DNA from: Perna viridis
Taxonomy: Eukaryota
DNA length: 64,000 nt
Direction: 5' to 3'
Assembly: GCA_037379345.1 (NCBI GenBank)
Contig: CM074512.1
Location: 48,691,597-48,755,596, forward strand
A program made the translations under genes and the position numbers. The notes beneath the pieces were generated by a model. That model saw only the letters and a list, made by a program, of their open reading frames with translations. It did not search any database and was not told the DNA's origin. This document shows, in pieces, positions 116-60,747 of this stretch. Position 1 is the stretch's first letter. The number at the start of each line of letters is the position of its first letter.

Positions 116-271
116 GATCATGAAGGTGTTGCATTAAATCTTGCTGTGGCCCATATGGGGATACTTGTGTTCCAAAACAGTACCAAAATTAATACATTCT
201 CATGGGCAAAGATCAGAAAACTCAGCTTTAAAAGGAAGAAATTCCTGGTCAAACTCCATCCAGAGACTTAT
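116..271 (+). CDS. FARP2: FARP exon (FERM C-lobe)
   Basis: cttag|GAT...TAT|gtaagt; [52 protein letters not shown]. Confidence 0.95.
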
Positions 272-3200: not shown

Positions 3201-6200
3201 TCTTAATTATCAGTTGAGTTCATTTCGTTTACTTTATTACATGCCAACAGTTCTTAGATGAGCTTTTGAAATTAATGGAAATTTGCCTCTATTACAGGGA
3301 TACTATAAAGATACTGTAGAATTTTTCTTTGAGAGTCGAGATGAGAGTAAAAACTTCTGGAAACAGTGTATCGAACATCATGCATTCTTCCGTTGTCACA
3401 TGATCAAGAAAGTACCGAGAAACAAAACAAAACTAGTCAGTAGAGGATCATCATTTAGGTAAGATTCAACAGATTTATATCTAATTTGGCACTGTTGTCA
3501 TGGGATTTTAAAAAAGAAGCATCAGGCCTAAAAATTGTTGTTATCTAAAGTTAAATCAAAATGGCTAGATCATATTCAAATTATGACAGATTTTGATGGT
3601 TTATGGTTATTTTATATTTGTATAATAGTATTTTTTTCACTTTGGTGGAGACCAAAAGAACAAACAATTTAAAACATTGATAAGGCCAAATAAAATTATA
3701 CCTGTTTCCTGTTACATGTCAGAAAAAAATATGGGTTGGTAGTTTGGGATTTCATTTCATTTTATTTTTTCCCAAATTTCATAAAAAACAACTTCAAAAG
3801 CATTTTATTAACCACCCAGACTTTGTGCAAACCAAAAATTGTTTACCATCTGTAAAATGTTGGGTCATTTTGTGGTACTTTTGTTGTTTGTTAACTTGAA
3901 AATAAGTCAGTCAAAAGGTCAAATCATGAGTCGGTGAGGTAACCTAAAAATAAGTCAGTCAAAAGATCAAGTCATGAGTCGGTGAGGTAACTTGAAAATA
4001 CATCAGTCAAAAGGTCAAGTCATGAGTCAGTGAGGTAACTTGAAAATATGTCAGTCAAAAGGTAAAGTCATGAGTCGGTCAGGTAACAGGAAACACAGAT
4101 ATAATTGCATTTGACCTAATAGGTAGTTATAGTTGGTAGTCAGTAATTTACAATTAACCTATAAGTGTTGTAAATTTCTGTTTTTTGTTTTGTTGTTGTT
4201 GTGCTACACAGTGAAAGGTTTATTACTAATTCTGTTTAAATCAGACAAAACACCTCAGCTAACCCTAAAAACTTGAAGATATTTCATATTTTAAGACTGC
4301 TCATAGACAAATCATGACTAAACTCAGATTCTGTCTACATTAAACCCTGTCAAACCCTAAATTTGGTCTAAACAACCCTGAACTCTGGCCAGACGTAAGT
4401 TCTGTCTAAAGGACCATGAACCCTGATAGGCACAAATTGTGTCTTAACCAAACTTAACCGTCCTCAAATTTTTTTTAATCAAAACACCTGACTAAACCCA
4501 AAATATAAATCCAATGCCTAACTGTAATAAGATAAAGTCATTTCAAAGAAGGTTAAGTATTAAGTAGCATTTTTTAAGAATCATACAAATTCTGTAAAAT
4601 ATGATACAACTCAATTTTTATTTTTATTATGAAGTTTCTTTATACATGTATGCCTATATGATGAAATGTATAATTATTAATTCCAATCTGTCTGCACTTA
4701 GGAGACAATACACATTGAAAATCTAATAGTTTCTGTTGTATTTTAGTCATTTACAGAGTTATCTCCCTTAATTTTGAAATCTACAGTACATTCTATATAA
4801 TTTTTATCTCCTATGAACAAGGGTTATATGAAAAACCACTTGTTATTTTTCTTTTTTCTGATATTTTCAACAAAATATCAAAAATAAAAACATGTAGGCT
4901 TTCCAACCATGAATCACATTTTGCATGATTCTTATATGGAGTGCTACTTAATTGTTTCATTGATAATATTTAATTAAACTTATTATGAAAGTTAAGCATC
5001 TCATAATACCTGAGTATTAATAAAACATTGATAGTTTTAAAAGATCTAACAAAATAAAAGTTTTTGACTCCTTGCGATGCAGTGTGTCTGTCCACAAATT
5101 AGTCAGCATGCTCACAATAATTTTATTGTTAAATCATACTCTTTCCCTAGAAAAATACTTATGAGGAGACTGTGTTAAGTTACAGTCGTTTGCAGTAGTA
5201 CTATTTCATGGTATATTCTTCAGAGATTTTAAATGACTATTACAGTGAAGCTTGCTAGCAGAATCTCACATTATTGTATTAGCATGTTTATGACAAATAT
5301 TCTCTTGATACACATTTCTGGGTAAAGTTCATATTTTATGCTTCCAATAAAAGTTTATTTTTGAATTTATAACCTAAGTGATATTTAAAGAAGATGATAA
5401 AGTTGTCTAGCAGTAAATCCCAAGAGATTTTAATGATGCCTAGTTTGAATGTTAGGTGAGACTTGTCATTGTGTGATTAATGATAGCTCAGTAGACAAGG
5501 ATCAAGATAATTGTGCCAGATTGACTTTCGTAGTAAAACATGTCTTGCACTCTTCTGTAAAATCAAAAGATACTTGAGTTTCAGGCACATTTTGTTGGGT
5601 ATATATATGTTACATTGAACAGTTTCTATTGCATTTGCCTTCGGTAATAAATTTGTAGCATTTTACAACTCTGGAGACATGTTTTAAAGAAGCTTTAGTT
5701 TCATGATTGCTGCTAGAGTGTAATATGTTATAGTAACTTTGAAAAATTTTTTTGTACCTTAGGAAAATGTTATTTGGGTGCACATGTTTTCAGTTACTTT
5801 TTTACATATTATATATGAAAGTAATTTTGTCTCCCCCGCTTTAACCACTCTTAATGCTCAAAAAGTTCGGTTAATTTTATAGTAAAAGTTGAAAATCACT
5901 GGAGTCTCCCCCCACCCATCAGAATTTCTGGATCCACTACTGATGCCATGTTAAATTGCTTTGATTTCAGATATAGTGGTAGAACACAGAAACAATTAAT
6001 GACATATGTTAGGGAGTCATGTGTCAAAAGTCCATCATTTCAAAGGTATGCAAATCACTAATATTTTACACATTCATTTTCATATTTGCACATGTTTCAG
6101 GAAAATCCACTTAAGCATGGTTGTAGGTAGTTAGTGTGCATGGATTTGGATTTTAAAGAAATATTTATACTTTCATAAGTAATATTTGTAAGAGGAGGCA

Positions 6201-9200
6201 GTAATAAGAGTACAAATTGAAAATTAAATGTAAAGAAATAATCAGCTCATTTCTTTGTTGAATTGTTGACCAAGGTTAAAGTAAAATTGATGTAAACATA
6301 TTAAAATATCATTGAAAATCTTCAAGGGAGAGATATTCCCCACTAAATACTGTTTATAATTTTACTTGTTCAGCATGCATCTACCCCTCCATTCATAGTT
6401 TATATTTACCTTTCTGACAATTTCACTTGGCATGAGTCACCTTCAGTACTTAGTATATTCATGGGTAAGTCCCGAAATCTCCATATGCATACATTATTTA
6501 CCAAATTACTTTTTACCCTGCATGGTAATATATCTTTCTTTACCTTTGATTTTGCCAAAATAGGATTCACAGAAAGTAAGTTCGGCTGCTGAAAACATAC
6601 GCTGAATTTTTTTTTGAAAGCATGGCAGTGATATGTTTGCAATTAATTTGCATGTGTAGTTGGAATATGTTAAGTTTTATTATGCCACTTTTTATTTGTT
6701 TTGATCTGTGGTACCTCTAAGGTTCTAAAATGACATGCTGTAAAGGTTTTAGACCAGAGCTATTGTAAAACTTTAGTAATATATGACCAATGTCATTGAC
6801 ATATGGCAGCGTTATTTCCAATGTCATAAATAATTTTTTTTTCTTCTAATTTTACCCTCGTCACAACAGAACTTCGCTCCATAATAGTCGCAATTTTTTA
6901 CAACACATAGGCCTTGTCTTTCCTTTTTAGGAAGAAGCTATCGTGGGTTAACGATAAAATTGAGTTTCTATGGTTCATTTCTTAAGCATTACATATATAT
7001 TCACTGCAACTACTTGACACAGTCACTTGACATTTTGGCTTTTATAAAGTTTATAAAGTTGTTTTATATTGTGGGTTTTTATTTTGGGAATGAGTGACAA
7101 CAACTTCCTGTTAGATGACTGTTCATATTTGACCATTTACAAAATCTGGTTTTTGGGGATGGCAGTTATGGGCTTTAGCTCACTAATTTGTATTTTATTA
7201 AGAAATTAAAGAATAGCTAATTGACAAGGGTCTTAGAGGCTACAAGCCGTGATATCTGACCTCGGGGAAAGGTTAACAAGGTAAATTAGAACAGGTTTCA
7301 TTATTAACAATTTAATTAAAACTCCTGCATGACTAATTCAATAAGAGATAGTGTAAATCAATGTATTTTTACTAGCAGTTTATTTTCGCTAATTTTGTGA
7401 GCAAAAGAGAACCGTGAAGTAAATTACTGTGAATATTTCTCTTTATACTGAAGAAACAATGTTTAGAGAGTGTTAGACACAAAATTCAATAGTTGCAAAA
7501 CTGGATTGACATCCTGGACCAAAAATATGAAATTATATCGAGAATGAATATGGCGAATGTCAAAGAGACAACTATCCCACGGGGATGAAAATTATCAGCT
7601 CAAGGCCACCAATGGGTCTTTAATGGAGATGAGGAAACCCTCATACCATAGTGCAGGCTGCAGTTGGCTCTAAAACAACTTTATATATAAGTATAGCTAA
7701 ATAGTTGTCTCTATATACTTCAGCAACATGAAAGTAAATTTAATGTGAAAATGAAACAAGATATACAGAGGTTAAAAATTCCTGACTTTGGACAGGCACA
7801 AAAAAAAAGTACAACCCTCTCCATTTTTAAATCTGGCCACTGTGGAAAAAATATAACACAAATAAACACATTAGTTTGGTTAACAGAGATATACAAGGCA
7901 TATACCTGCTTTGTTAACTTATTTGCTGTGTTTCCTAATCATTAGTATGTTGAAATTTATGTTTAAGCATGTTGCTGGTTTTGTATATTTCCATGTTACA
8001 GCATGCCAATCTTCTTAATTTTAAGAAACTGCTAAAAAAAACTGTCATCTTTGTTAATGGTAATAAGTAAAGATGTTATAAGTACCTTGTTCCAATTTAG
8101 AAGTGAGAGGGATTAATCTTGTCTGTCTATTCTTCATTTTCATCCATTTTTGCACACAAAAAATATTTTATATTATATTAATCTAACTTTGCAAAATAGT
8201 TCTGTATTTGATATGTAGCTCTGTAATGATCAGTTGTAAGTTGTTTTATTCAGTTCTGCTTAACCCCAACTTTCCATTTGATAAACTTGAAATACCATTC
8301 AAGTACTACAGTGAACTTCAAGGAATGGAGTTGGTCTTTAACTGATTGAATGACCATTATCTGATAAACTTCATCAGATATTGTAACTGTTCATTTAATA
8401 TGGAACAAAAGGGTTTGACATCAGTCTACTAACTGGAAAATTGACAAGGAGATTTAAAATTTCTATTATTTCATAGGTATTTAAATTTGCATCTGAAAGA
8501 GAGTTTATATCTCCTTGTCAGTTGTCCAGGTGATAGACATTTCATCAGGTATTTATCAGTCAATCAAGGGAAGACCAACTTTATACCCTTAGGTTAATCA
8601 TATTGTGTTATTTAACGGAAGAACTTGTCTAGTATCCTCAGCACAATACTAAATGCAATGGCGTAAAAACACTCGTCAACATTCATGATCAAAAATAAGA
8701 TCCACTGTGCACATCAGTCAGCATCTTTTCAACAGATAAAACAAGTAAATTAATAACTATGAAAACTAAAACGTGAAAAGCTGTTCATCATATAATACAG
8801 TGTACATATTACAGACATGATTTTTGTCTTCTTTTTTAAATTACGCTTCTTTTCTTACTGTATGTTTACTTCTGATTTCGTCAATTTTTTCTTTGTTTTC
8901 TGCATATATTTATGTCTGTAATATTAAAGAACAAGGTAATATACATGTATGCTATGTAAATGAATTGTAATTTATCTATTCATTGGATATATAACAATAG
9001 GGTTTGACATCAATCAACTGTTCAACCAGTTTTTCTTTGTTCTAGGTCAACCAGTGGTCGCATTTCATCAGCTAGTCGTAGTACCAGTGTTACTCCTAAA
9101 ATTCCTGCCAAAATGACATTGAACAATTCTACCGATACCCACAACAGCACAGCCTCTAGTGGGTCACATATCCTCAGTACAGGGGCAGAAACCCCTCATG

Positions 9201-12200
9201 ACAGAACAGAAGTGGTTGATGTACATAGCGCTGCCAGTTCTCTGTCTGGAAGCCGCTCGCTGGGATCACCAAAACCAGAACACAGCTCGACACCAGATGG
9301 AACGATTGACACAAAGGCCTATCTCGTTGGCGGAGGTGAGGAAGCATTGCCATCTATAGAACGAGGTTCTAACTTAGTTGTTACTAACGAAATTGTTGTA
9401 CATAATCAAAATATGTCATCCAAACAAAGTCCAGTTGCCTCTGATCTCATACTAACTGGTGACGGGTCTCAATTGTATTCCTTTAGCCAGGTAGATAATG
9501 CTATAGATAAGCTTAGTTCTGAATTGTATAATGTAGAAAATGTTCCAGATACGTACCGTGAGAAACTTTACTCTTCGCTCGGTAGAGATTCTAAAAAATT
9601 ATCTGAAAAAGAAAAATCACAGCAGCAAAGCAAAGGAACTTTACCAGAAAGTCAACCAAAAAGAGATTTGAGTGCTATAAAAAGGGAAAAATTGATGGAA
9701 CAAGAGCATGATCTGCAAGCTGAAACTCAGAGAGAAATTGAGAACTTGATTGCTTCTGTTCAGGAAGAAAAGCGACGTCTTGCAGAAGGCGAAACTTTTA
9801 TGATTGAATTGAAAGATGATATTCCTGCAGGTTCTCACATTTCTGTTAGTGTAGGAGTATCTTCTCGTCAAAATTCTCCAGATAAACAAGTTCTTGCATC
9901 TCCTATGTCACAGGAATCTGTTGATTTATCTGATAGACATAGTACTGATCTTGATCTTTCAGCACAGACGAGTATTGATTGTGACAGTTACAGTTTTTCT
10001 TCATTAGCAAACAGTGAAGACCTTATGGATGCTATTCCGTATATTCTTCATCGAAGACATTTTTCTGAAGATGCTGAAGAAGAAATTGAGAATAATGATA
10101 TCATTAGTCCTGTAGAGCCAAGTGCTGAACTGAGTTCTATTCGTAGGAGTAGAAGTTTGAAAAAGAAACGTCCCACCAACATACAAGTAGAACAGGTAAA
10201 AGTCTATGCAAGTTCTGAAGATGGATCTCCATCGCCCCAACTACATCAAAGATCTTTTTCCTGTGGGACAAAGAGATCACCACACAGTAGATCTCCATCT
10301 GAAAAAGGTCTGCGTATTTTGAAAAGTAGATCTCCATCAGGAAAAAGGACACCAGGATCCATTTCCCAAACATCTCTTGACCGCTCTCCATCAGGTGCAA
10401 AAAGGCGTAACTATTTTACACTACCACCAAGAGATGCTTATTCTAGCATTGATGATACTACAAGCCCTGTTTTTGATACAGATATTGTTAAGCATATTAA
10501 AAGTCAACAGTCAATTGATCGTGAGGATAGTAACACAAGCATCCAAATGTTAGGTCAAGCAAATCTGACTGATCAATCTCCAGTAGTTGAAACAAATGCT
10601 ATGTATTCTCCTGAATATGTTCAAGTTGAAACTTTTAGAACTGACAATGTATTAAATGATGATAAACAATCAGATGGACCTGTATTTGGGAAAGTAGATG
10701 AAAAATCAATTGACCTGTCAGCAAGAACTGTTGAATATATGGAATCTCAACAAATTTCTCAATGTCATGATGTAAGGGAAGTTATCAAGGAAGAAAACTC
10801 CTCTCCAGAAAAATCTCCTGACAGTGAAAGTATAAAAAGTGTACAAGAAAAAGTTAATGTCAAAAAGAAGGACATGATACAAAAAAGTTGGAAATACACA
10901 AAGCAGGAAACTGTAGATCTGATGGGAAGTCATCACAGTGACACTGGAAGTCTGGACAATCCATCTCCAGCAGCCGTGTTCCTGTTATCTGAAGGTGAGT
11001 ATCATAGTAAAGTCAAAAGAAGTAGCAGTGGCATTTCATTCAGCACATTCAAACCAGCTAATGTTTCTACTCCAAGCACTCCAGGGTCACGCCCCCAGAG
11101 TTTTACAGAATCAGAAAAGGGAGAAGACACTGTCTCTCTTTTGTCTTCTGCAACTGATACATTGAGTAGGACTTGTAAAATTCCAGAGGAAAATATTTTC
11201 CGCCCAACAAGTCCTAAACCTAAATCAAATCATCGTAGGAGCTCAAAAGATATGCCAAATATTCGATCACGTAGAAAAGTAAGCTTTCCTCGTGAAAGGG
11301 GATACAAATATAGCTTTGAAAGTGTAAATGACCCTCCATATTTGTCACTTCCTCGTTCAGAGGATATCAGCTTAGAGGAATTCAATAAAACATCTGATTC
11401 TTTAACTGGATATTTATCTCATGATAATTGTGAAATGATTGAATCGGATACTACTGAATCTTCCAATGGTGAAACAGACCAAGATATTGAGAGCAGTGAT
11501 GATGATCGCCATGCGGAGTTCTTAAAATTTGCAAAAAGTTTAGCTGATTCAGGAAAGGAAATCACCGCTGATTCTGGAGTTGGTGCTGAAATGGAGAACT
11601 CAGTTGTCAGGGAAACGTCTCCCTTAGAAGTGCTTGATAATCTTGAAAATTCTCTTCAGGATTCTTTTGAATATAGTCTAACTAGAAATGGCTGTCAGAT
11701 CAAAATTGATGTGGATGGTAGTTCTTCCGATAGTGAACCCGAGATTGTTGTTACAAAAAAACGTTGTAGTGCTGATCCTCTGGAGGAGTTAGAAAATTTA
11801 GACATTGCTGAAGTTGCTTCCAGTACAAGCAGCAGCTCTTCAGAAGGACGGAAAAGAAAGAAGAAAGGGAGGAGAAAATCTAGTCGAAATCAACTGGTTA
11901 TACCACTGTTAACTATTAGTAATCCATCTAGTCCTGAAGAAAATAATGTAGATAGCAAATACAACGAAATAAGCTCTAATTCTGTTTGTTAAGATATTTT
12001 TTACATGAAGGATAATGGGGAGTAACTCTGATAGGGATAAAGTTCAAAATTATCTGTCTGTCATACATGGAATAACATTTTTCAGCATCTAAACATGACG
12101 CTGTCTAACATTTAGCATAGTGCAATCACTAAACTCAATAACAGTATTGGCTTATCACTCTAAAACTAAAAACACTCAAATATTTGGTATTGTCCAATTC

Positions 12201-15200
12201 ATTAAAAATCAATCTCTTTACCATGACCCATAATGATAACATGACATAGTATTAAAGGATTATATCAAAATTTTACCATTGATCATGCATGTTTCATGTA
12301 ATTTATTATTATACATGTCTATACATGTACAAGCAGCATGATAGTGATCTCGGGTATTGATATAATGACATTATTGATTAACATGAAAAAATTTCATTTC
12401 TTTAAAGGAGTAATGAACAATTTTTATAAGTCTTCATACTTCATTCAAATGTGAATTTTTAAGTGTCAGTCTCTCTAAGAATCAGGCACTTGGTGAAACA
12501 AGGTATGAAAAAAAAAAAACACTATTTTGAAAGTTTAATTTAACTATTTGTGCCATCAGAATCATTGAAAAAAGTGAAGATTCTCCTTATCGCATTGGTA
12601 TTTTGATTAATAGTTTCTTTGAAATGCTTTGAAAATTAATTTTTCAAGGATAGATAACTGCCAAAAACCTCACTGTTATAATATACTATTGAAAATATTT
12701 TGTGAGCAAATCCAGTGATGCAGAGATAAAGAAAATGGTCTTTTTTGATAGAGAAAAATATCCTTGAGTGAAACTACATTGTCATATATATAGGTTTTTG
12801 ACATGCATGTTTCTGATTTTCTCCATTTTGCCTGATTCTTACAAATACTTACACATAATATTAATCTCCTAACTAGCTAGTTATTTTTCTGTAATAATTT
12901 TAGAAAATTTTTTGTGGAATGATTGAGCTTCAATTGCTGAAGATTTTCGTGTTTAATAATCTTTTTTTCTTTTTATCATCTGATGTTATTTTCCTGAACT
13001 TGTTTAGAATTTATTGTTGAAGGAAATTCCATGGTATTTCCTAATGTTTCCCATTTATACACATTGTCAATGGTTATAAATGGACAAAAAAGAACATTAC
13101 ATCACTATAATGACTTTTGTTCTGAAATGTCAGTGTAACAGTGTCAAATCCCTGACATTGTCTCATGTCATTTATTCTCCCTATTGATTTTATCTGGAGG
13201 AATTACACTCTGTCTCTTAACAAGCTAGAGTTAAAGAACATGCTTCTAGAATTGCTATGATAGGTAGCCTTCTTACTTCTTTATCACATAACAGTGATAA
13301 AAATTCTAGGTCTTCATATATGAGACATTAACATGTTTTTAAGGCGTAATATTTTACCCTTTTTGGTTCGTACCGCTTCTCATTTTCATAGGCAGATCCT
13401 GGGGCACTCTTATGCTATGTAATGGCAAATAGTGAAAAGTTTGATTCTTCTCTCAATACATGTCTTTCTGGTTTTCTAAGGTAGGAATTTCATTGAAGTT
13501 TTTTGACAATATCAAATGATATAAGGAAATAAATTTTCAGTGATATTTCTACAGTAAAATATATCACAGGGTTTTTCTTGTTTTAATACAGAGTTACTTC
13601 CCTTAATTTTGGTGCATGTTAGAGTATTTGATAAATAATTAGTTGATGAATATTTCCTTATTTGCTTGGTGTGATTTTTTTTTCTTATTTTCATTTCTGT
13701 TGATTCCTGCTGTGATATGACATTTTTTATACACCTTTTTCACTTTTCTTTCAGGTGTTATATTATATATTGTTTGTTATTTGTTTAGTTTTAATTTTCT
13801 TCTTTTTAATTAATTTTTTTTGTCCCCTTCAGTTTACCTTCAATATAGTGTAGTACAGAGATCTCCCGGGATAAAAGTCTTGAGTGTTCCATGGGAATTG
13901 ATGAATAAGGGAGGTGCTGCAACTTTAATATGCTATTTGTTATTTTCCATTACACTTTGAAGGGTCAACTTGGAAGGGTCTTTCGGTCTTTACCCTTTAA
14001 CTACAAACCCAGAACAGTTTGTTAATGTGAAGGAACTATGACCTCAAATCCCATTTCATAGCGGTTCCTGGTAGAGATAAGTTGGTCATCCAAGATAGAA
14101 GCTTCCACATTGATAATGGAACATGTTTATTGTATTCTTCTTACCCTTCTGGAGCACCTGAGTTTACTCTAGTTCTTTTTTTAAGGTTCATGCTGATTAT
14201 TTTTTGAGTTTCATGATGCTCATTTTGGAGCTCCTGAGTTTACCTCTACTTTTGCAAGTTTTCCATACGCTCATCTTTGAGTTTCTGAGTTAACCAAAGT
14301 TTTGCAAGTTTCATGCCGCTCATTGTGGAGCACTTGAATTTTCCCTATGTTGGCAAGTTTCATGCTGCTCATTTCGAAGTATTTGAGCTTACTCTAGATT
14401 TAAGAGGTTCTTGCCAATTGTTGCAAAACACCTGAGTTTACATTAGTATTGTTGGATTCATGCTGCTGATCTCTATGTATGTGTTTTGTTGTCTTTTTTA
14501 GTGTTTTGCCTACAGATTTTTCCTGCTTTGACAGTACCCCTGCTTTGACTGTACCCCAGCTTTGTCAGTACTCCTGCTTTGACAGTACCCCTGTGCTTTG
14601 TCAGTACCCCTGATTTGTCTTTCTGTTTGTGTTATAAAACAGTAGGAGAATCAAGAGTGTTGATGTTACTCAGTAGTTGACCTTGATAAAGTCACTATTG
14701 CACTTTTGTGATACCAGTTTGTCTCAGAAACCCCTGAACAAATTTTAACCTAACTTGGCAGGAATAATATATAGAAGGACCTTTACAGACTTGTTCAAAT
14801 CTTTGTACACAATGTGGAAGAACAAGATGAACATCCCCAAGTAATTTAGACTCTTATTGGTGAGCTTATCCCCTTTGAAGGTTTAAGATATCTTGAAACT
14901 TTGCAGAATTGTTTTAAGCAATGTCATCAGTTTATATACTTTAGGGAGTTGGTCAATACTTACTATTTAAACCCTTTGGTTTAGTCATTTGAAAGACATT
15001 CATAGTTAAACCCAATAAGTTGTTTTTTCAGGGGTTCAAAATTAGCACTGGCCAGAGGTCCCGTGCCTTCCAATTTCTGATGCAGGACATTGGAAATATC
15101 ATTACATCATAGGTTCTGGACCTACATTTTTGTACCATATGTACCTTTCCTTTTATTAAAGACCATTCACTTAGGATGCAAATAGGTTCAGGACCTGTCA

Positions 15201-18200
15201 CTCTTGAAAGTAAATTTTAATCCCTGTTCCTTACTCAAATGATTGGTTCGGGGATGAAGATAATTAAACAAATAAATATGCATGTGTATAGAAGGCAAGC
15301 CAAACCATACTTTGGGGAAGTTTTAATGTTTCTTTTATTAATAAAAGCATAATTGTATTGTCGTTCTTATGTTGGTTGCATTTACATGTTTTGTTTTAAA
15401 GTTGCATGTATCTGTTTAACTTACTAAAACTTTGTTGTTGTTGTTTTAATTTTTTTTCATAGTTTTGTTTTACAATTGTTTTTTAGTTTTTTAATTTTAT
15501 TAAAATTTTATTTAGCTTTTTCAGTGTTGTTGTTTTTAGATTCCACTCTGTTGTCTTAAAACTTAACTAGCTCCACATGTGTTATGAAATATACTTACCA
15601 ATATTTCTTAATTAAAATGCATGACCCAGTTCCATAAATATCTTTAAACTGAGATTTTCTTGAAATAAAATGCTTTCATGCCATCTGGTTATTAAAAGTT
15701 GAGTTGAGGATGAATTTTTGGAAAACTCAATTAAGATTTTTGTGAAACCTGGGCCAGCTCTAAAATTATCAGTTACTAATACTGAATTTAGTTACTGATT
15801 TGTGAGGTTAGGATCATCCTTTACAATCAGCTCATTTTTTTGAATGGCGTAAACAGTAAAACCTATTTATACAAAAACCTGAAAACCTGTCCAAACCAGA
15901 CACTTTTATCTATACAAAAACCTGAAAACCTGTCCAAACCACTTTTATCTATACAAAAACCTGAAAACCTTTAAAAAAACAGACACCTTTAGAAGTCCCT
16001 ATAATTTAAGTTTGATTGTACTGTATAGCAGGTTATTTTAGCAGGTGTAAAATTTGGCAATTTTGAAGCAAACAAGTATACCAAATAATTTGGTATTTTT
16101 AATTTTGGTGGATGCTAATTGGTGCTTTGAGTACTTAAGCACATGGTAAATATTTGGAGGAATTTATTTTTGTGTTTTTTAGACACACCGTTAAAATATG
16201 TGAAAATCAGCACCCGCAAAAATTACCCACAATATGGTATGTTTAACCTGAATAAATTAAACACCTGTCTAATCCAAACAAATTTATGTGTCCATAAGGG
16301 ACTCTAAATTATTTAGACAGGTCTTACTATATTCAGATTCACCATCGTAAGGGAAAATAACAAATATACGTAAATGTACAAGTTATGCCAATTTTTAAGA
16401 ATGTATTGAAGATATTTGTAAACTGTACATGGAAATGTTATTATGGATCTCAACTGTTATCTGTCTCAAGGGTCCTATTATAAGGTATCGGTAATTACCA
16501 TATATTGAGAATAACATGTTTTATTTTGAACTTTTATATCTGAATTATTTATGTGAGTAAATGAAGATTTATACAGCATTCTCTGTGTCAATAGATTCAG
16601 TCAAGATTTTTTCTCGCCCTCTTCCCCACAACATAACTAAACAATTTGATTTGTTCTCTCGGAGCAAACTAGGTTGAGGTCATTAATGTAGATAGATCTG
16701 CTGTCTATGATTTTTTTTATCACAAAGCAATTTTTAATATTTGGGCTGAAATCCATTAGAAATAAAATTACAAAGAATGTTCACTTATTTTATAACAGGT
16801 CATACAAATTAACCTGGTTTGGGCCAGTTACACATTTTATAAACTGCTTCACAGGTAACGAGTGTAAACTGCCACAAACCATGTTGGTGTGTATACTTGT
16901 AATCTTTGCTTTGTAGCCTTAACCTTTTCTGCTATTTTCAAGTCTGTAGACAGATCATTTACTGCTAATTTGTACATATTTCAGTTTTAACAGACACTCT
17001 AGTCGTATTTTGCTTAGTTTGTGCTTGGCTGAATAGCTTCATATTTTGTGTAGGGAACTATGATAAGCTGTACCTGTATTTTTATCTTAAAATCATCAAA
17101 TTTACCTTATATTTCAAAAGAAAAGAGACGAAATGCATTTCCTCTTCTGAATTCAAGAGTAATTATCTTCACTATCTTAAGTTTTTTTTTATACCAGACC
17201 ATATTCAGACACTGCTAATGTGATTCATGGTGTAGAAAAACCCATGGATCAGATGATGCCATTTTGGTCTATGTATGCTATAATTTTATATGACAATAGT
17301 CCTTTCTGCATTTGGATCTGTACTTTTGAGAAAACTACACTTCAACCTCCCACTAAAATCAACCAAGTCAAACCAAATCAAGAACAATAACTCTTGCAAA
17401 GTGATAATTCCATGTACAATCTATAGAAATTTTATCTCAAAATGACAAAAACTAAGACTGGTTATTTGATCCTATAACAATTTCTGAAAAAGAAATAAAA
17501 GTGAATTTGATGGGTTTTTGTCATGCATGATTTACCCTTGTCTGATTTTTATTAAAAACTGGCATCGTATTCACAAAAAGGTGCTATGTGTGAAATTGAT
17601 CATAAATTATGACGTCACAATACTATTTTAGGTTGTGATGTCATTACTTACGATCAACTTTACTCTTACGATTTTTTTGTGAATTTGACACCTGGTACTT
17701 AGTTGTTTATCTGTATATTATTTCTTGAATTTGTTTCCAAAACTGTCATGATATTTTTTTTCTTTTTTTTTTTTTTTTTTTAGATTTTTAGAGTTATAGC
17801 TAGGCTTTCAATGTATTTTGACATTTTCAGCTGCACATGCTTTGAAGTAATTGTGGTTATGTTATCTTTAATAAATTACAACATTCTGAGAGCTATAGTC
17901 ATCTTAATGTTAATGCTTTTGGTTTTATTTTGTTAAAAGTCAGTTCATAATTACTTAACGAAATTTCAACTAAAATCCAAATAAAATTGAAGTATAATGA
18001 ATGAAATACTAAATGTACTTGCAGTATACCTTTCATACATGTACCTATCTTTTCGGTAGGTGTAATTTTTAGAACATTCATGATTTTCTGTACACACATA
18101 ATAGAAAAATAAAAACAAACCATTTGTATTATACAGTTCCAAATTTGCTACAAAAATGGCATTTGTATTTATTTATCCTTTCATTGAGACGAAGAATTTA

Positions 18201-21200
18201 CAAGCCTGTCCATTACTCTGTATGAAAAGGTAATACCTTTAACATTCAGATTTCTCTTATTTTGTTATTGTGTATGATAGAAAATTAGCACCAGAAAGCA
18301 ATGCACCTGCTATTAAGAAAGATAACTCTTGAAACTTGGGGACAACTCTAGAGAATATCAGAAAAAAATTTTTAAATTTGCCAATGTAAAAAAAATCATG
18401 GGAAGGAGGAAACCTGTAAAATTTTCCTGGTAGAGTTGTACAGATTTTTTGATATAATGATTCTACAGTTCAGCTAAAAATTGCTTTCATTTAGCAAATG
18501 TTTTTTTCTCTATTTCACAGATTGACTATTGTTTGTACAGTAATCTTGTTCATGTTTTCTTGGTTTGACAGTAAAAAAACTACAATTTTTATGACCAACT
18601 TCTTTAAGTTTGGGATCCTTAACATTATTCCAGACCAAATTTTACCGGTATTTACAACCATTGATTTCCATCTTCTTGTACTACACATGCTACAGATTAA
18701 ATGTTCATGTCAGTACACTCTCCAATGTTTCCCCATTAAGAAGTTTCCCTGTCCAACTTCTTTCTGATTGCCCTATTGTAATGGTTCTCTTCAGGATGAG
18801 CCACTTAATCTAATACAATGCACAATCCATTCCATATTAAGACAAAGAATTGAAGTAGAGTGACTCATTGTTAATTTTACATGCTTAGAAAATTAATAGT
18901 AAACATCTTCAGTACAATTGTGTAAAGCATCACCCTGTCATGAAGGAAAGGAACTTGTTAAGAAGTGAACAGTTGATGAATCAGTTTAATCCCTTGTCTT
19001 TGTAATGGAGAATTGTTTTGAGCTATTCATCCACTAATAATTTATTAGAAAATCTGTTACATCAGTGAAATTAAGAAATCAATCACTACCTTAACTTAGA
19101 AATGAATAGCTTAGCAATGTTTTTATTAGTGACATTATAAAACTCCGTTCATGATTACAGTATATTCTCAAAATTCCAGTCTATTTTTGTTTTGGCAGAA
19201 ACTATCCAACGACTTAAAATATTTTTAACATGATTGTATGGTAGTTAGGTATACTGTTTCTATACTGTGGCTTCTAAGAATACTTTGATGGTTTATATTG
19301 ATTTTAACATAACATTTTAAATATAGAAAAATACTTTTTTTATTCCTGTGTTTGTATTACATGTCACTACCTTAGTGTGTTAGATAATCGTGCCATCACT
19401 ATGTTTAGTCTAGTGCTAATTGCTGATGTTTTTATATATAATTATTTTACATATTGTTTGAATTCTATTGTTATAAGACTGCAAATTTAATTAGTTTTCT
19501 TTGGTAAAACAAATGGCATATTTTAATTCTAACAGAAAGGTGACTTTACAAGTTTATCTTTCACTTTAAAATATGATTACAAATTAGAAGCCCGTACAAA
19601 CCAACCAAATTTCGCACACCATTCAGGATTGATACTCAACAATTGGTTAAATAATGGTAGAATATCATGCAATTGTCTACATTACTAACCCCCCCCACCC
19701 CCCACCCCCCCGTACCCCCAAAGAAAAATTATTTCATTTAAAGTATAGGAGCTTGTATTTTGAATACTGACTAGTGTAGAGAAAGCAATTTCGATTGAGA
19801 TACTGTGGTAGTTTCTTTAGTGAAACTAAATAAGATATAAGTCTTCCGTCACATAAAATGTTTTGTATCAAATATACTTGACTTGTTGCATCAAAATTTT
19901 TGTGTTTTGGGACCAAGCTTTTCTAAAAATATGTATGATTTAAAAGATACTTACCAACTTACCAGATATTCTTGTTTATGTTTGGAATATCAGTTCAAAG
20001 CATTTCATGCTTTATCCTTTCTTCAGACATGAAAGTATATATACTCTTCACATTTACTTAGTACCTGAGGGCAAATTTTCAATAATTGAACCAAGATAAT
20101 ACAATAAGTCACCACCTTTAAATTAGATGATAAAAATCTGTAACTCTAATCACAGAGATATAAAAGCGAACACAATTTCTTTCATAGTTTTGCAAAAAAT
20201 AAGGCTTTGGCACAACAACAAAAAAACAATTTTATAGACAATTCATAAATCTTTAAAGATCTGTAACCCTTTAGTGATAACATGTTTTTACAAATTTATC
20301 AATCACTTTTGATTCTTGACACAATGTACATGTATATTTTAGCTTCAACTTTGTATTTGTGATATTTTTGTTATGCAATGCTACTGTTTAAATTGGAATT
20401 GTCATAAGTCATAAAATAGTTGTATTAGGACATGATGTTTTTTTTCCTTCAAATTTGTATTTTAAGTAGTACTCCAGCTAAGACTCATGCAAATTCTGTA
20501 ATATGTGATACACCCCAAAAAAGGCTACACATTTTTATTTTTGTTATTAAGTTGTTTTTTTAGGCCTATATGATGACATGTATAATCATTTATTCCAATC
20601 TGTCTGCTATTAGGAGAAACAATTCACATTGAAAATCCAATGGTTTCTATTGTATTTTAGTGTCATTTACATAGTTATCTTCCTTTAGTTTGAATTCTAC
20701 AGTACATTCTATGTAACTTATATCTCTTATGAACAGGGGTTATTTGAAAAGCCATGTGTTAATTTTTATTTACTACAAAGTTTTAAATTAAGTATCAAAA
20801 ATGAAAATATGTAAGCTTTCCATCCATGAACCACATTTTGCATGATTCTTAGCTGGAGTACTACTTAAATGTTTGGTTATTGGTATTTATATGTATGTGA
20901 ATCTTGATTGAAAATTTTGTAAAGAAAAAAAAATAACCAGGTAGTTTGTAAGCTGTGTTGGGGATGAATAAATACATTGTTTTTATGACTTCTGATGCAT
21001 TTGAAGGGAAATTACATCTGTAACAATGCTGAATTTGGTATTTTTGGGGGTAACCAAAACAAATCCCCTGAAAACAATAGTCTTCTGATGCATCACTCAT
21101 ATTATGACTGCTACATGTAAAAAAGATACTTTTTCAGAAACACTACAAAGCAATTTTTAACAGCACCTTTAAATATATAATTGAACAGTATCTTCAGTAT

Positions 21201-24200
21201 ATATATATACAGATGCAGACCTAGTTGTTTTACTGCTAAATTAAAGAAAAAAGATTGAATTTGTGACTTTGAAATATTTGTAATTTTTACTTTCTTTTAC
21301 CATTACAAAACATACAGACGAAATAAAAAACCTGATGTATGCTTCGGTTCTATAATCAGTTCTCTAAATATCACCTAAACCACCCAGTAACCTTAAATTA
21401 TAACTACAATATCCTTTCAATACAAGTTATCTGACACTTTTTCTCATTTAAAAAAAAAATTATTTTCTCTTTTTACTCTTTCATTGTAGTATTACATTTG
21501 GATTTTTTTCTTTGATTTTTGTTGTCTTGTTCAACCTCCTAGAGAACAAAAATAATCTATCATTTGAATAGTGCTATTTCCTTTATAACTTTTCTTTTGC
21601 TTTCCTGTGAGCTTTTAGTTTAAAGTAACTATCAGCTGGTTGCAAGATTGAGTGCATCTAATGAGGTTTATTGTCTTCGATTTTATAAAAGAAGAAAAAA
21701 GTGTCAGTTGTAAAAAGTGAATTTTCTCCATATTGAGTTAATAGTGGAATTGTTTTCTAATGAAGGTGGTTACCTAGTCATAAGTTCAGAACTCTGTCTG
21801 AATATAATGGAGTGATAATTGTTAATGCTATAATTTTTCTAGTTAACGGCACATTTGTGATGATATGAAATGAGGCCTCCTGTTGAGAGTTTCTTTCATT
21901 TATTATTTACCAGTAGGTTTTTGTTGCAATAAATTGATATTCACAGTTTTTTGGTTCTTCATATATTCTGTTGTAATTGGATAGGAAAGTGAAGGCTGTT
22001 TTAATGAATAAATGGAAAGATGCAATGTGGCCATATTGATTTTTCTGTCCTTGGAACAAAAAGTCTCAATTGTGAACTGTCATCTTCCAGCATCTTTTAG
22101 CTATCTCTCTGATAAACTTCAAAATCTTTAGAATCAGTCCTAGGCTTGTAACATATTGTCGATTCTCTGCTCTGTAAGATGTACAAGCAAGATGTTGATT
22201 AATCAATCAATCTTTGGTTATTGAAGCTCTCTGTGAAATTTTATCTATCATATCTGTTATTTGTTTTCTTATGAGTCTGGTACAAGTTATGAAAATAAAT
22301 GAGTTTAAGAATCATCAACCTTGAGATGTTTTCAAAGCTTAATCAGAAAATATCAAACTACATCAACACAGCTCAAAACATGACTAAATTTGACATTCTA
22401 TTGAGAACTACTCAACTACACATACATAATAAATATACATTGGATTATTTTAATTTATAAATAGGGAGGGGTGAATTTTTCAGCATTTTTCTGGATTTCC
22501 CAGAATGCATCAGAAGTAATGTGATTGGTTAAGAAAATGAAGGGTTTTTGGAACTGAGTGGATTTTGATTGGATGACTTGTTAATTATAGAGTAGCTCTT
22601 CATTAACCTGTTCTGTCAGCATGGTCCAATAGTATCAGAGACACGATTTGAACATCTAAGTGACTCTGTCCCAAGCTAATATCAATATATAATCTTTTAT
22701 AACTTCTTGAGAGGGTCTACAGGGTAGGCTAATGATTATTGATTTTTAGTAAGAAAAATCTGAAGCTGCAACATGAAATTCTATTCCTTTTATAGACAAT
22801 ATTTAACCTGGCTCCAACTTGATGAAGTGTCTTACTGGAGCCTAACATAATCAAAGATTTTTACCATTGATTATTTCTATGTGCTGAAGTAAGCCACACA
22901 AACATTGTTTGAATTATTTAATTCAATACAGCTATTGATTTTAGTGAAATTTCCTGAGGGAAGACCTTTATTATCTGTTCTGTTAACTTTATGGTACTTT
23001 TGGAATGGCTATTAAGTATTAGAATGCTAATTCTAATGTCAGGAGCATTCTCCTGTAAAGAACAGTGGTGAAGCTCAGTTTTAGAAATTGGACTTAACCT
23101 CTCCTTGCATTGAAAAGTTTTCATTTTGTTTTTTTTATTATTATTATTATTATAGTTTAATGATTTTTATTTGCTTCTGAGCAGAACTTGGAAAGTGGTT
23201 ATTGATAAATATATCAAACTAGGAAATATATGGCCACAATGAGAAAATTCCTAGATTTATAAAATTAGGGCACAGGCAAATTAAATTTTTGATTTGTTAT
23301 CAATTTAAATGAAAATTGATGTCAATTTGAAAGAAATTTACCTAATAAATTTTCTTTTTTCGGAAGATAAAAAAGGTGGGTCCTGAGGGGTTGAGAATCT
23401 AAGATATTTTATTTATTTTGGCCTAATGGTCGTTGTCTAGCAGCAAAATCAAGGTTAAGACAATTGGTAGTATTTTGGAGTGAAGTACAAAACAAAATGT
23501 CATTTAGTTGTTGAAAAAATGCCATTTGGTCCTTGATGTTTAGGAAAAAAAAACATTGAATGACTTTAGCGGCTCGAAATCAGTTTTTTTTTAAGCTAGC
23601 AGTGATACCATTGACAGTTTTCTTACTTAAACCAAACTTCTGATTGGCTGTATTACTTGTGTAATAGCTGTTGTTCATATGCTCTAGCATTTTGATTGGC
23701 TACTACTATTAAACTGGTTCTCTTATTCTACAGAAGTGTGGAATCAGTTCGAGTTTTTCCTATAGACCCTCATTTTAGATTTTGAAATGATGTTGCACAT
23801 TGACAGGGTTGATTATTGCATTTACTTTACAGATGATTATTTCTTCACAACTAATTATTATAAAAGACTACCCACCGTGCCAAAAATGATGAATAATTAA
23901 ATATCTCCATATCTATCTTATCTGATACACAACATAAAGATGGCAGCTATTTAAACCTTTGGTACAGAGATAAAACAGTAGATTTTTTTTAAGATAATTG
24001 ATTTGTAATCAACAATTTAAATCATACATGTATTACATATTTTACAGTATGTATTGTCTGATAGTGCTAGTTTGTTCATAGATCTACAGAAATCTATATT
24101 TTATATGCATACGATAAAATTCCACCTGTTGGATTGAAATTTATTGTTAATGCCTCAAAATTTGGCATGCAACAGCTTTTTATAGTAGTAATTAGTAATT

Positions 24201-27200
24201 GATTCAAAGTTGACTTTAAACGTCATTCATAAAAAAAAATACAAAATCCTTTAATTTAAGGCGACAAACGTAATATAAGGGTTTTTGTTACAAGCATTAG
24301 ATATTGTTTATCATGATTAAATTGGTATAGTGAGATTAAAAAAGTTGTGTTTCCCTAGTATAGACGAAAATCCTATAAAATATAATATGCATTGATGTAA
24401 TTTGACTTTTCTGTGACCAATGTTGATGAGAAGCTTGACAATAGTCAAATTGGCTTCTTTAGTTATTGATTTTACTATTAAGTGCCAAGATTCATACATT
24501 GGTCAGACAAATTTGGTACTAGCAGTGTGGGTAAATTATTTGTTTGGTCACACTTATTATTAGATTAGGTTAGAGTCTTTATTCATCACTATGACATGGT
24601 TAGGAAGCTATCGACTGAGGCTGATCAATTAACATCTGGGTAATCTTGGAGTGTAAAAAAAACACTTTTTGTTAAAAAAAAATATACAAATATCCAAACA
24701 TTTTATGCATATATATTGATTATAGATAACATAAATAAAATATGAAAACAGAATTTTTTGGACAGCTAAAATCACGTATTTTGTCAAGATGTAGCTGGTA
24801 ATTTTGGCATATTTTAGTAGTCTTTCTAAAACTGACAAAATAAATTCTGAAAAATTATACTCTAGGCTCAAAATTAGAAGAGCCAAAATTTTTTTTATAC
24901 ATTTTTTCCTCAGAGTCGCCAAATTTTACTCTCACCAAAATAACCTGCTATATGCTAACACTAGTGTGATTGCTCATATATGTTTGTTGGACACTAGTGT
25001 GGATGATCATATATGTTTGTTGGACGCTAGTGTGATTGATCATATATGTTTGTTGGACACTAGTGTGATTGATCACATATGTTTGTTAGATACATGTATA
25101 AACAAAAATTTAAATTGCAGTTTTTTTCAGTAGTATATCCCATGCAAACTTTCATAGCAAAGTAGAAATATTTTATATTAATAAATTGATGAAACTTTTT
25201 ATCAAAATGAAAATATTGGAAGGATTAAGTGTAATAAATTGAAACCTAAGTGAAATTTAAATGCTATTTAAACAGTCATCCAACCTATAAGGACCAACCC
25301 TATTTCAATCAAGTAGAGCTATGTGACCAAGAATTATTCTATTTCTTCCGATTGAGAGAGTTTGCATATTTCATCTGTGTAATACCTCAGATAATTCAGC
25401 ATGTTATTCCATGACTACCAATATCTGCTGGAAGATATTAGTTTCACAGCTAGATTTATGTTAGAGGAAGGCAATATCTTCCCTTAATTTTGAAGTAATT
25501 GTAAAGTTAAAGTGATTATCCACTATAGCCTAATTATACAATGATACATCAGTAATCAATATGCTGCACTGTAGATTGTACTTAAACATGCAAATATTTA
25601 TTGCTGAGAGGTTTATTGTTCAACCAGTCACAATTATACAGGTCCTAATAGCATTTTACTGGCAGTTGATCTTAGATACAAGCATGAGTAGAGATTAGGC
25701 AGGGTCATTTGGCTATTGCTAAGAGGTTATTATGTAAAGTCACAATTATGCTGGTCCTAATAGCATTTTACTGACAGTTGATTTTATGTACATGCCTGTA
25801 TAAAGTTCAGGCAGGGCTATTTGGTGTGATCTTTTACTTTAAGTGACAGTTGGCGTTAGGTACAGGCCTTTGTAGAGTCCAGACAGAGTTGGTTGATGTA
25901 AACTTCTTATACTGTATTTATAAGTATTATGTGATACCATACAAAAAGTTTTGTGTCTGTCCATCTGTTGGCCTCATCCTCAGTTTCCAGAAGATAACTT
26001 GAGGACAGGTCATTGATATTTTTCTTTAAAAAAAATTTACGCAGTTGTTAAATACCATTAATTACAGGTTAAGTTCAATTTTCAACAAATCCAAAATGTA
26101 GTTTTCATGTTAAGCTGATTTGAACATTACGCCATTCCCCCTCCATTTTTCACCATTACATGGGAGGAGGGGGTTAACCACTTAATGTTCCATTTATGCC
26201 CTATTTTTCGTGGTACAATTATTGTCACCATGTACAGAATCATAAAAAAACTTTAAATTTTGGTTCAATGTACTTATTAGTTAGCTTCTGCATTTTTTAA
26301 AATTTAGTCTTAGTTTTACAAAAGTATTACTTTTGATGTTGTGAACCATTTTCATTATTAATTGAATCAAAATTAAGATCTGTTTTATCATAATTTTTGT
26401 AGGAGTTATTCCCCTTAGTATAGCTTTATTCTAATGCATATTGATATATGAAGCTCAGTGATAACTGAAAGCAAAAGTTATAGATATGTAAAGCACAGAA
26501 ATATCTATGTTTATAAATTCTTAATGAATCAAGTTAGTGCTGTACTTTCCCATGGTATTACAAATGAATTTTTTTCTCATGTTTTTATATGTATAGAGAT
26601 GATGGAACATATGTTAGTGATCATATTTCATGCCTTAATGTGTTTGATATTATGGAAACATTATTCATTATACATGTATTATTTTTTTAATTTCTAGTGT
26701 TATGTAATGTGGTATTGATGGATTATATTTTGCATTGAACTACCTATGTATTTGTTACGCTGTAACAATGTAAATGATTGATTTTTGATGTTAGAGAATA
26801 TTGTTATTGATGATATAGGTCAGAGGCAACAGCATAGGCAAACTTATATATATTGACTGTCTATCAGTGCAAAGCATGTGATACTTTTATCAAGTTATAA
26901 CTAAAAATTAATAGTAAGGCTATGAAATTACTTATTTCTTCATGAAATGGTTTCCCAAGAAATCAAATTGAACTTGTTGATATTTATACTGCAACCATAC
27001 CAGTATACCAACACTGACTGAAAATAACTTCGTGTATTGTTTTGACGTTGTCAGGATGTTGATCATTTTTAAATTTTTTTTTTAAATGTTTTTTTCTGCT
27101 TTTAAAAGTTATTTTTCATTCAAATTTGCATTGCAATATAAAGACAAGAACAGTGCACTTACTTGACATCAACTTTGATATATGACTTGTGCTTGAACCA

Positions 27201-48459: not shown

Positions 48460-48600
48460 CTATATTCTGTGACCTAGATAAAACACTGCTATATCACTTC
48501 CTAGGAGCAGTACCTACAGACAGACATAGCTGGTTTTGGCTATATTCTGTGACCTAGATAAAACACTGCTATGTCACTTCCTAGGAGCAGTACAGATAGG
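48460..48600. repeat. 80-bp-period tandem duplication
   Basis: CTATATTCTGTGACCTAGATAAAACACTGCTAT.TCACTTCCTAGGAGCAGTAC at 48460 and 48540. Confidence 0.9.
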
Positions 48601-49307
48601 CATGGGTTTGGTTCACCATATTAACTGTGTTAATGGCTTGAATGACATTCTATGTTTTAATTATCACTGAAATTAAAATTAATTATGATTGAAATTTATT
48701 TCATTTTGTGTTCAAACAATAAAGGTGGATATTCACTGTCCTATTTTATCTAATGCTGTGTCTTATATCTTCTATGAAATTGTGATGGTACCTTCATTAT
48801 GAAATATGAACTACATTTCAGAATTAATACTTCAGACTGAATTTTTTTTCCACTGTAACTATTGATTATTAACTCTACAGAGAAACACTGTCAGAATATT
48901 GGTAGTAGATAGAAGATTTATTTTTTGGTGCTTACTAATGTATATAGAGATCATACCATTGTACATTGTCATTAATAAAAATACATTGTCAGATTGGTAT
49001 ATACCTTTCTTTGTTAATTTGTTATATACAGACAACAACTGGAAATCAGAAGTTAACAAAATTTGAAGTAATTATTCAAATGGTTACAGTAAAAACATGA
49101 TTAAAAAAAAACAAAAATCCACAATACAGGGAAAGAATTCATTCCTGTATACAAGGCACTGGGAAAAGTAGCTCTACATTTTTGTTAAACCTGTGGGGTT
49201 GTATACAGCTGCACTCGGCAAAGCATTATGTTGTCTATTGGGGAAAAAGATAATTGACCTTTTTGGAAGTATTTTATTTTATATCATCTTGCATAATAAG
49301 TGCATTT

Positions 49308-49500
49308 TAAGGAATATTTAAGGAAAAATGTGTAGGGGGTTGGACATCATCTTTTAAAAATTGTATGGATGGGGATATTTCTAGGCATACATAGTAATAC
49401 TTAGTTATAAACATTTAATTTTAATTTGATGGGTGGTGGGGTATTACATAAATGTGCTGTCCAACCCACCCATACACTTTTTTCCTGGAATACTCCTTTA
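49308..49500. mobile_element. MITE with imperfect ~40-bp TIRs
   Basis: AAGGAATATTTAAGGAAAAATGTGTAGGGGGTTGGACA ... TGTCCAACCCACCCATACACTTTTTTCCTGGAATACTCCTT. Confidence 0.6.
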
Positions 49501-60529: not shown

Positions 60530-60747
60530 CATCATTCGTAGCTGTAATGTCCGCCGTCTAACTTGTACCCAATATCTCAAGTAAGCTTAGCTTGTTTTGT
60601 GACGAATATTAGCCCTAGAGACCCTAATCTGAAAATTTATGAATTAAACATCACTGCAAATGATGGGAGTACAATATTTAACCTATTGTCTCTCACGGAC
60701 AATCAATTTAAGAGCGTACAAAGCCAAAATTAACTGTTATTGAAGCG

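Follow-up and report, generated by a model that had tools for sequence, protein, structure and literature searches.

Can a single FARP gene encode both a Rho-type guanine nucleotide exchange factor (GEF) and a protein without any exchange domain? FARP proteins have mostly been studied as Rho/Rac exchange factors, and FRMD7, the gene of X-linked infantile nystagmus, encodes FERM and FA domains and a long tail on a large last exon, with no DH or PH domain. The question is raised by a stretch of 64,000 nucleotides from the mussel Perna viridis (GenBank assembly GCA_037379345.1, contig CM074512.1, positions 48,691,597 to 48,755,596, forward strand; hereafter the window), in which an exon of a FARP gene contains a splice donor and also stays open for 981 codons to a stop. 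It is very probable that this one gene makes two proteins, the GEF form by splicing at position 9335 of the window and a GEF-less form by reading through to 11992. The GEF-less form is supported by purifying selection, by conservation, by low-level RNA cover and by the same layout in other molluscs.

Searching with the translation of the tail returned two kinds of protein, FERM+FA+tail without DH or PH and FERM+FA+RhoGEF+PH+PH. The first kind is seen in P0002 ("FARP2 [Mytilus coruscus]", 1337 residues, FERM+FA+tail, no DH/PH), with 66% identity along the entire tail, and the second in P0009-P0011 (1111-1117 residues), with 90-99% identity limited to the first 97 codons. P0010, of 1111 residues and from a spliced RNA contig of 4955 nt, has FERM_N at residues 20-82, FERM_M at 101-206, FERM_C at 212-302, FA at 313-355, RhoGEF at 613-797 and PH domains at 830-925 and 999-1093 according to Pfam. 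By tblastn it falls on 116-271, 3295-3459, 5966-6046 and 9044-9334 and then on 17 exons from 27353 to 43313, and P0002 has the same first three exons and continues colinearly with 9044-11989. The FERM-FA exons of the window match P0010 at 98-100% identity. Pfam and the RNA contigs thus place an N-terminal FERM_N/FERM_M/FERM_C and FA, followed by DH and two PH domains, on the same transcript, as belongs to a FARP gene. The window starts inside the gene, with the upstream exons at G000:C2:48669262-48691179. When all six frames of the 723-Mb assembly were searched with FERM-FA, every exon fell in one locus (C2:48669262-48697642) running into the window, and therefore this mussel has a single FARP/FRMD7-type gene; the sole additional match, elsewhere, was 42% identical. 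The parts of the gene in the window are these (a slash marks a splice junction):

116-271, forward strand: FERM_C exon, P0010 residues ~212-263 (tblastn with P0010 and P0002)
3295-3459, forward strand: end of FERM_C and start of FA (tblastn, 98% identity to P0010 residues 268-322)
5966-6045, forward strand: FA-domain exon with donor GT at 6046, phase-2 intron (tblastn; RNA joint from 6045 to 9046)
9046-9335, forward strand: shared part of the big exon, in both products, 97 codons for the last 8-9 FA residues and a Ser-rich linker (acceptor ttctag/G)
9335-9341, forward strand: internal 5' splice site GGAG/gtgagg, phase 1 (RNA contigs of all runs leave at 9335)
9336-11992, forward strand: read-through extension, 884 tail-specific codons and the stop TAA
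27366-27643, forward strand: first GEF-specific exon, a linker (acceptor ttttcag/A; loose ends of RNA contigs map here; tblastn)
28406-43313, forward strand: sixteen exons with RhoGEF (DH), PH1 and PH2, ending at the GEF-form stop codon (tblastn with P0010; Pfam)

The big exon lies in a stop-free frame of 994 codons (9008-11992, forward strand), the sole long open frame in that part of the window, which contains no N. Its acceptor (...ttctag/G at 9045/9046, the AG preceded by a polypyrimidine tract) is confirmed by RNA contigs; behind it one base finishes a phase-2 split codon and 981 codons follow up to TAA at 11990-11992. At the base composition of the exon itself, 994 open codons would arise by chance with a probability of 1.4e-31. 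The remaining five frames of the 9008-11992 stretch hold 34-136 stops, and the longest open frame over 200 shuffles of the window was 182 codons. GC content is 0.35-0.38 over the big exon compared to ~0.30 in the surroundings. An earlier note on this DNA had described an in-phase acceptor followed by 981 open codons, and both the frame scan and the RNA joint from 6045 to 9046 agree with it. The same note placed the start of the exon after the FA domain, which needs correcting: FA covers P0010 residues 313-355 and the exon starts in codon 347, inside the domain.

Contigs of four sequencing runs were placed on 6000-11999, those of X1 and X18 being identical and counted as one. Because all four runs show the joint from 6045 to 9046 (GT..AG), we take them to be RNA. 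Over 9044-9335, which is 99% identical to P0010 residues 347-443, the RNA contigs have a depth of 19-57; in every run this main contig ends at 9335 and resumes with letters found at 27366 behind ttttcag, and thus the GEF form is the main product. From the mapping of P0010 and from these contigs it follows that the GEF form must exit the exon at 9335 over an 18-kb intron (9336-27365). It was expected that the GEF could be made only by splicing out from within the exon, with the DH-PH-PH exons at least 15 kb downstream, and this is what the RNA joint from 9335 to 27366 and the exons reaching 43313 show. At the donor, splicing gives Asp (G+AT) and read-through gives Gly (GGT). The donor GGAG/GTGAGG is identical in L002, a contig of a related mussel, and in M. 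coruscus.

Is the exon also read past its donor? RNA from the tail is present as short contigs of 157-485 nt within 9429-11938, without loose ends and at a depth of 2.4-4.6, ~7-19% of that of the shared part. RNA cover over 9336-11992, proposed as a check of the long form, is thus found at low depth over 9429-11938 and is missing from 9336-9428. Such RNA could be mere unspliced precursor or intron retention that yields no protein, the open frame being a relic, and the low, patchy depth beside a strong donor at 9335 would fit this. However, the neighbouring 3-kb intron of the same precursor (6046-9045) is nearly without unique cover and has little but pieces that resemble repeats, each with a loose end at either side. 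The reading as precursor is further disfavoured because a ratio of nonsynonymous to synonymous substitution rates (dN/dS) of 0.085-0.18 over 850 codons, together with motifs invariant among bivalves, gastropods and a brachiopod, needs translation. We regard it as extremely improbable.

The rates were obtained by the Nei-Gojobori method on codon alignments. Against L002, the dN/dS of the tail-specific codons is 0.085 (dS 0.93), and against M. coruscus 0.18; for the 96 shared codons the values are 0.009 and 0.035, respectively. The tail past the donor is under strong purifying selection, as the earlier note had supposed from the length of the frame. The frame is unbroken across the donor in four species (9008-11992 in the window, 29-3004 in L002, 60253-63399 in M. 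coruscus and 48578-52954 in the scallop Ylistrum balloti), so that the conservation of the exon across bivalves, suggested as a check, holds in mytilids and scallop alike. In Y. balloti the 1459 open codons (48578-52954) lie within a 33-kb intron that separates the shared exon from the first GEF-specific one, at 82421. Coding conservation begins right at the donor (ERGxxSN..VTNxIV), ahead of any tail-specific Met.

An alignment of 12 tails has 44 invariant columns, clustered in blocks that include DIPYxLHRRH, LPPRDSxSSxDDTTSP, DFPSPAA, FSTFKP, SPLDxLDxLE and KRxSxDPLExLEN, and invariant columns are found also across 24 tails. There are also basic clusters, e.g. KKKRP. When the tail profile was run against 1.84 billion representatives, 49 proteins matched, the named ones being from molluscs (Bulinus, Elysia, Saccostrea, Mya, Physella) and the brachiopod Lingula. 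A further group of tails comes from unannotated assemblies and starts with MRTVS..TPKTGTLNSRD (P0052-58, 62, 66, 69; loci L005-L007); at locus L005, FERM exons are followed by an exon of 1530 codons. A word-based search with the 24-sequence alignment (A2) gave 2 proteins only, low-complexity words having swamped the candidates, and the ESM Atlas yielded just cluster names (FARP1, band 4.1-like). No Pfam domain was found in the 981-residue tail. AlphaFold gave the tail a mean pLDDT (predicted local distance difference test) of 38.6 and predicts a mostly disordered chain, without helices except for three short ones at tail residues 112-149, 722-737 and 762-772.

Among public gene models, FERM-FA is fused to this tail in M. 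coruscus (P0002), Saccostrea (P0031), Patella (P0017), Gigantopelta (P0020), Babylonia (P0022), Bulinus (P0038), Elysia (P0071) and Lingula (P0060). Babylonia areolata, a gastropod, is annotated with a FERM+FA-only product of 1709 residues and a GEF product of 1175 residues that have an identical start coordinate, and the FERM+FA-only product ends within the range of the GEF product. The first 461 residues of the related proteins P0022 and P0024 are common except for a 15-residue indel. The Lingula protein consists of FERM_C, FA and tail and is annotated as "dentin sialophosphoprotein-like". In Ylistrum (L004 49232-52951), Mizuhopecten (P0007) and Lingula (P0060) the FARP tail is publicly named as a separate or unrelated protein; the names "unc-89-like" and "dentin sialophosphoprotein-like" are most likely artefacts of Ser/Asp-rich composition.

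Several points weigh against the gene making the long protein. No contig in any of the four runs spans 9335/9336, and 9336-9428 is uncovered in all of them. Because of this missing bridge, the presence of FERM exons and tail on one RNA molecule in P. viridis is what we infer. The runs had been taken as RNA by a guess, which their spliced joints bear out, and two of the four seem to be one data set. The matches in Logan that cover the whole tail (P0001, P0003, P0004 and P0015) derive from unspliced, genomic-type contigs; P0001 and P0003 had been considered as spliced long-form transcripts and were rejected, since their 5' ends are intron sequence and they are therefore genomic contigs. In Mizuhopecten the tail is annotated by NCBI as a gene of its own, "muscle M-line assembly protein unc-89-like" (P0007).

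The missing bridge and the scallop annotation would both be expected if the 18-kb FARP intron housed a separate tail gene that has a promoter and start codon to itself and is never joined to FERM-FA. However, in mytilids and scallop the reading frame runs on unbroken from the shared exon into the tail, conserved coding starts at the donor before the first Met of the tail, and several independent gene models, RefSeq isoforms among them, fuse FERM-FA to the tail. Contig assembly often drops low-depth branches beside a high-depth contig, and the bridge at 9335/9336 may have been lost in this way. The precedent in nematodes is likewise a joined protein (PMC7260190). A nested gene is thus quite improbable.

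A third product would be possible if the tail itself could be spliced, and a candidate site exists:

10992-11000, forward strand: second donor-like site AAG/gtgagt after 10994, phase 1 as at 9335, consensus score 9/9 (candidate)

If used, this donor would join 650 tail codons to DH-PH-PH and give a GEF with a long linker, in addition to the two products and not in place of either. The site has a perfect consensus and the right phase, and it persists in L002 (GTGAGT) and in M. coruscus (GTAAGT), in the latter even with E replaced by K at that codon. In contrast, there is no joint or loose end at 10994, an RNA contig (10607-11011) runs through it unspliced, and 0 GEF-containing proteins among those collected carry tail motifs. 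The letters also encode part of the conserved PSPAAxxLLSEG, and coding may explain their conservation. Such a three-way switch seems unlikely.

Returning to two products, we propose that the single FARP-type gene of a mytilid mussel would make both proteins from one promoter. Where the strong internal donor at 9335 is used, the majority outcome in the runs examined, the transcript jumps 18 kb to 27366 and encodes FERM-FA-linker-DH-PH-PH, a GEF for the Rho family. Where the donor is skipped and the transcript is cleaved and polyadenylated beyond 11992, the exon would become a terminal exon of 2.9 kb and the product would be FERM-FA with ~980 residues of largely disordered tail with conserved short motifs and basic clusters. 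The poly(A) site of the long form would lie downstream of 11992, where a pattern scan gives candidates of the ATTAAA/AATAAA type:

12201-12256, forward strand: candidate poly(A) signals, ATTAAA twice (12201, 12251), with AATAAA following at 13528

By analogy with FRM-3A of Caenorhabditis elegans and with FRMD7, the GEF-less form would most likely be a scaffold, anchored to membrane or receptors, whose FERM-FA part binds receptors and recruits partners such as CASK. It would be without nucleotide-exchange activity and could rival the GEF form for common FERM-binding sites.

The same arrangement has been described in a nematode. The C. elegans gene frm-3 is the FARP1/2 orthologue and has two isoforms with common FERM and FA domains (Zhou et al. 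2020, PMC7260190). The C-terminal part of FRM-3A has no recognisable domain, FRM-3B has the GEF and two PH domains, and the worm FERM-FA is both required and enough for the clustering of GABA-A receptors, a synaptic task that it performs alone, and recruits LIN-2/CASK (PMC7260190). FRM-3 has also been called "a nematode homologue of FRMD7" (PMC7405782). As in the mussel, the GEF form of frm-3 splices out inside the terminal exon of the GEF-less form; here the donor at 9335 lies within an exon open to 11992 and its joint is seen in RNA contigs. A long read-through frame like the one that the earlier note would look for in other invertebrate FARP genes is present in M. coruscus and in the scallop, and frm-3 of C. 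elegans follows the same logic (PMC7260190). Since frm-3a/b has been published, the mussel layout is a further example of a described arrangement, and its novelty was overrated in that note. In contrast to this likeness in layout, the tails of frm-3 and of molluscs are not alignable apart from one motif, the mollusc tail being a distinct conserved family (the 49 matches above), and the function of frm-3 has been tested in the worm only.

That one motif came from a scan of all collected proteins, in which the tails of FERM-FA proteins of Trichinella and Trichuris carry GDIPY[TI]LH[VI]R, the invariant motif of the mollusc tail. It has seven fixed residues, and its chance is ~2e-7 per 400-residue tail, as estimated from typical residue frequencies. 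Four GEF-less FARP isoforms of spiders have PRTVDFVxVNQLPAVGSFSYRDDSV..SP, which aligns weakly to the mollusc block RRFELVNYHKLPPRDSYSSVDDTTSP, the domain E-values being 6e-5 to 1e-3 among 119 proteins. These motif matches suggest that the tail may date back to protostomes. The FERM-FA search, whose query was the natural RNA contig L001, also returned many FERM+FA-only products named "FARP1 isoform X" in RefSeq, from beetles, flies, mosquitoes, moths, spiders and octopus, and vertebrate FARP2 products that have just FERM+FA. The FERM+FA-only isoforms of arthropod FARP/Cdep are 479 residues long in Tribolium, 530-671 in Drosophila, 574 in Anopheles (AGAP001287-PC) and 664-776 in spiders; judged from the proteins alone, their tails are much shorter than that of molluscs.

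How does the long form relate to FRMD7? It was claimed to be FRMD7-like in architecture, and this proved right, with FERM, FA and a long tail, no DH/PH, no Pfam domain in the tail and a disordered model. FRMD7 is reported to bind CASK (PMC3633374). FRMD7 differs from the mussel gene in being separate and without DH-PH exons, whereas in the mussel the DH-PH-PH exons belong to the same gene. Introns were mapped exactly in three genes, with the joined exons of these public loci checked for translating to the known protein, and their columns were compared in a MAFFT alignment:

M. coruscus FARP (P0002 on L003): intron phases 0, 0, 2, 1, 2, 0, 0, 2, 2; giant last exon with residues 342-1337
Milkfish (Chanos) FRMD7 (P0194 on L008): intron phases 0, 0, 1, 2, 1, 2, 0, 0, 2, 2, 0; last exon with codons 374-730
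Danionella FARP2-like FERM-FA-tail gene (P0175 on L009): intron phases 0, 0, 1, 2, 1, 2, 0, 0, 2, 2, 0; last exon with codons 394-769, ending in TAG

Seven of the nine FERM-FA introns of the mollusc match FRMD7 introns in both column and phase. Intron 10 of FRMD7 has its counterpart in the phase-2 intron that precedes the giant exon and interrupts the R of F[QE]R, inside FA. Unlike the mollusc, FRMD7 then has an exon 11 of 25 codons and a phase-0 intron after ..SKQ before its last exon. It had been asked whether the big exon starts where the last exon of FRMD7 does, and it does not: the acceptor at 9046 corresponds to FRMD7 intron 10 and the last exon follows 25 codons on. In human FRMD7, c.1050+1G>A in intron 11 places the start of the last exon at codon 351 (PMC3163398).

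In the tails themselves no likeness was found. There was no FRMD7-like protein among the 49 matches of the tail profile, and tail profiles A1/A2 gave no match at E<10 to the Chanos FRMD7 (P0194), which as a single FRMD7 sequence makes a weak test.

GEF-less products of FARP2 are found in vertebrates, in Monodelphis (P0177), Myotis (P0171), Bombina (P0201), a bird (P0196) and fish (P0175/P0167). They consist of FERM, FA and linker followed by a tail without domains that is conserved from fish to marsupial and bird, with the blocks EEFIDDDPxEISF, NFPAYSVRSE, DILDQLEQLS and NLFFSNP. In mammals the GEF-less FARP2 follows the GEF forms up to ..CQG and then continues with V (GTN), as expected of donor read-through. 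This suggests that read-through of a donor occurs in vertebrate FARP2 as well and that the GEF-less form may have been retained. Unlike in the mollusc, a vertebrate-specific phase-0 intron splits off the first ~25 codons. The Danionella FARP2-like gene matches FRMD7 in its 12 exons and in every intron phase, and both genes end in a long exon. At the Danionella locus there is no GT at the point where GEF and GEF-less forms diverge, and the fish protein may therefore be a separate GEF-less paralogue. An hmmsearch of FRMD7 (one sequence) and the mollusc tails with a profile of the vertebrate GEF-less FARP2 tail found nothing significant. Homology of the vertebrate and mollusc tails was also considered with hhalign (P 0.019, probability 2.4%); this is not significant and no claim is made. 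No relevant description of a GEF-less FARP2 isoform turned up in a search of the literature. The tail of the Myotis protein (627 residues) stops early, without the C-terminal blocks found in the marsupial (Monodelphis P0177, 771 residues), frog, bird and fish, and the GEF-less FARP2 tail may be decaying in placental mammals, to judge from this single sequence.

According to the earlier note, FARP-type and FRMD7-type proteins may ancestrally have been isoforms of one gene that were later split between vertebrate paralogues. An old two-isoform state is supported by frm-3 and, as protein comparison suggests, by FARP2; a simple split is not, since FARP2 apparently keeps a GEF-less form. On architecture and exon plan, a descent of FRMD7 from a GEF-less FARP isoform is plausible. 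As a tentative idea, to which we give somewhat less than an even chance, the read-through FERM-FA-tail form without GEF would be an ancestral bilaterian feature of FARP genes (nematodes, molluscs, brachiopods, chelicerates and vertebrate FARP2). The motifs DIPYxLH.R and R.[VF][DE][FL]V....LP...S[FY]S..DD..SP would then mark an unrecognised scaffold module, and FRMD7 would be the paralogue that kept the 12-exon structure of that isoform and lost DH-PH.

Because the two-isoform logic has already been published for frm-3, these results do not overturn current views, and the mussel locus is a well-supported new example of the frm-3a/b type, not a new kind. The strongly selected tail, kept in molluscs and a brachiopod, marks the product without exchange domains as a maintained protein rather than an artefact of annotation. 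The analysis also yields a defined mollusc-brachiopod tail family with testable short motifs, gives a correction for gene models in which the tail is split off as "unc-89-like" or "dentin sialophosphoprotein-like", and adds a comparison with FRMD7 and FARP2 at the level of introns.

A few further observations concern the window. In the first GEF-specific exon (27353-27643), the RNA-derived P0010 / L001 is just 74% identical to the window (DLPPPYPSAAAY in P0010), compared to 98-100% in the FERM-FA exons. The RNA contigs placed on the window are identical to it, and therefore P0010 belongs to a close relative or represents a divergent allele, and the linker evolves fast. Further downstream, 41391-41585 and 41930-42106 align to overlapping PH2 residues of P0010 (997-1060 and 1026-1084, at 66% and 92% identity), and the pair may reflect exon duplication, an alternative exon or an alignment extended too far. 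Within the intron before the big exon, RNA contigs lie on 8343-8450 and 7625-7854 at a depth of up to 97, flanked by unrelated letters, and these stretches have the look of copies whose transcribed source, a repeat or mobile element, sits elsewhere. The second-longest open frame of the window (60712-62007, forward strand, 431 codons), downstream of the FARP gene, gives no Pfam match at E<=0.1.

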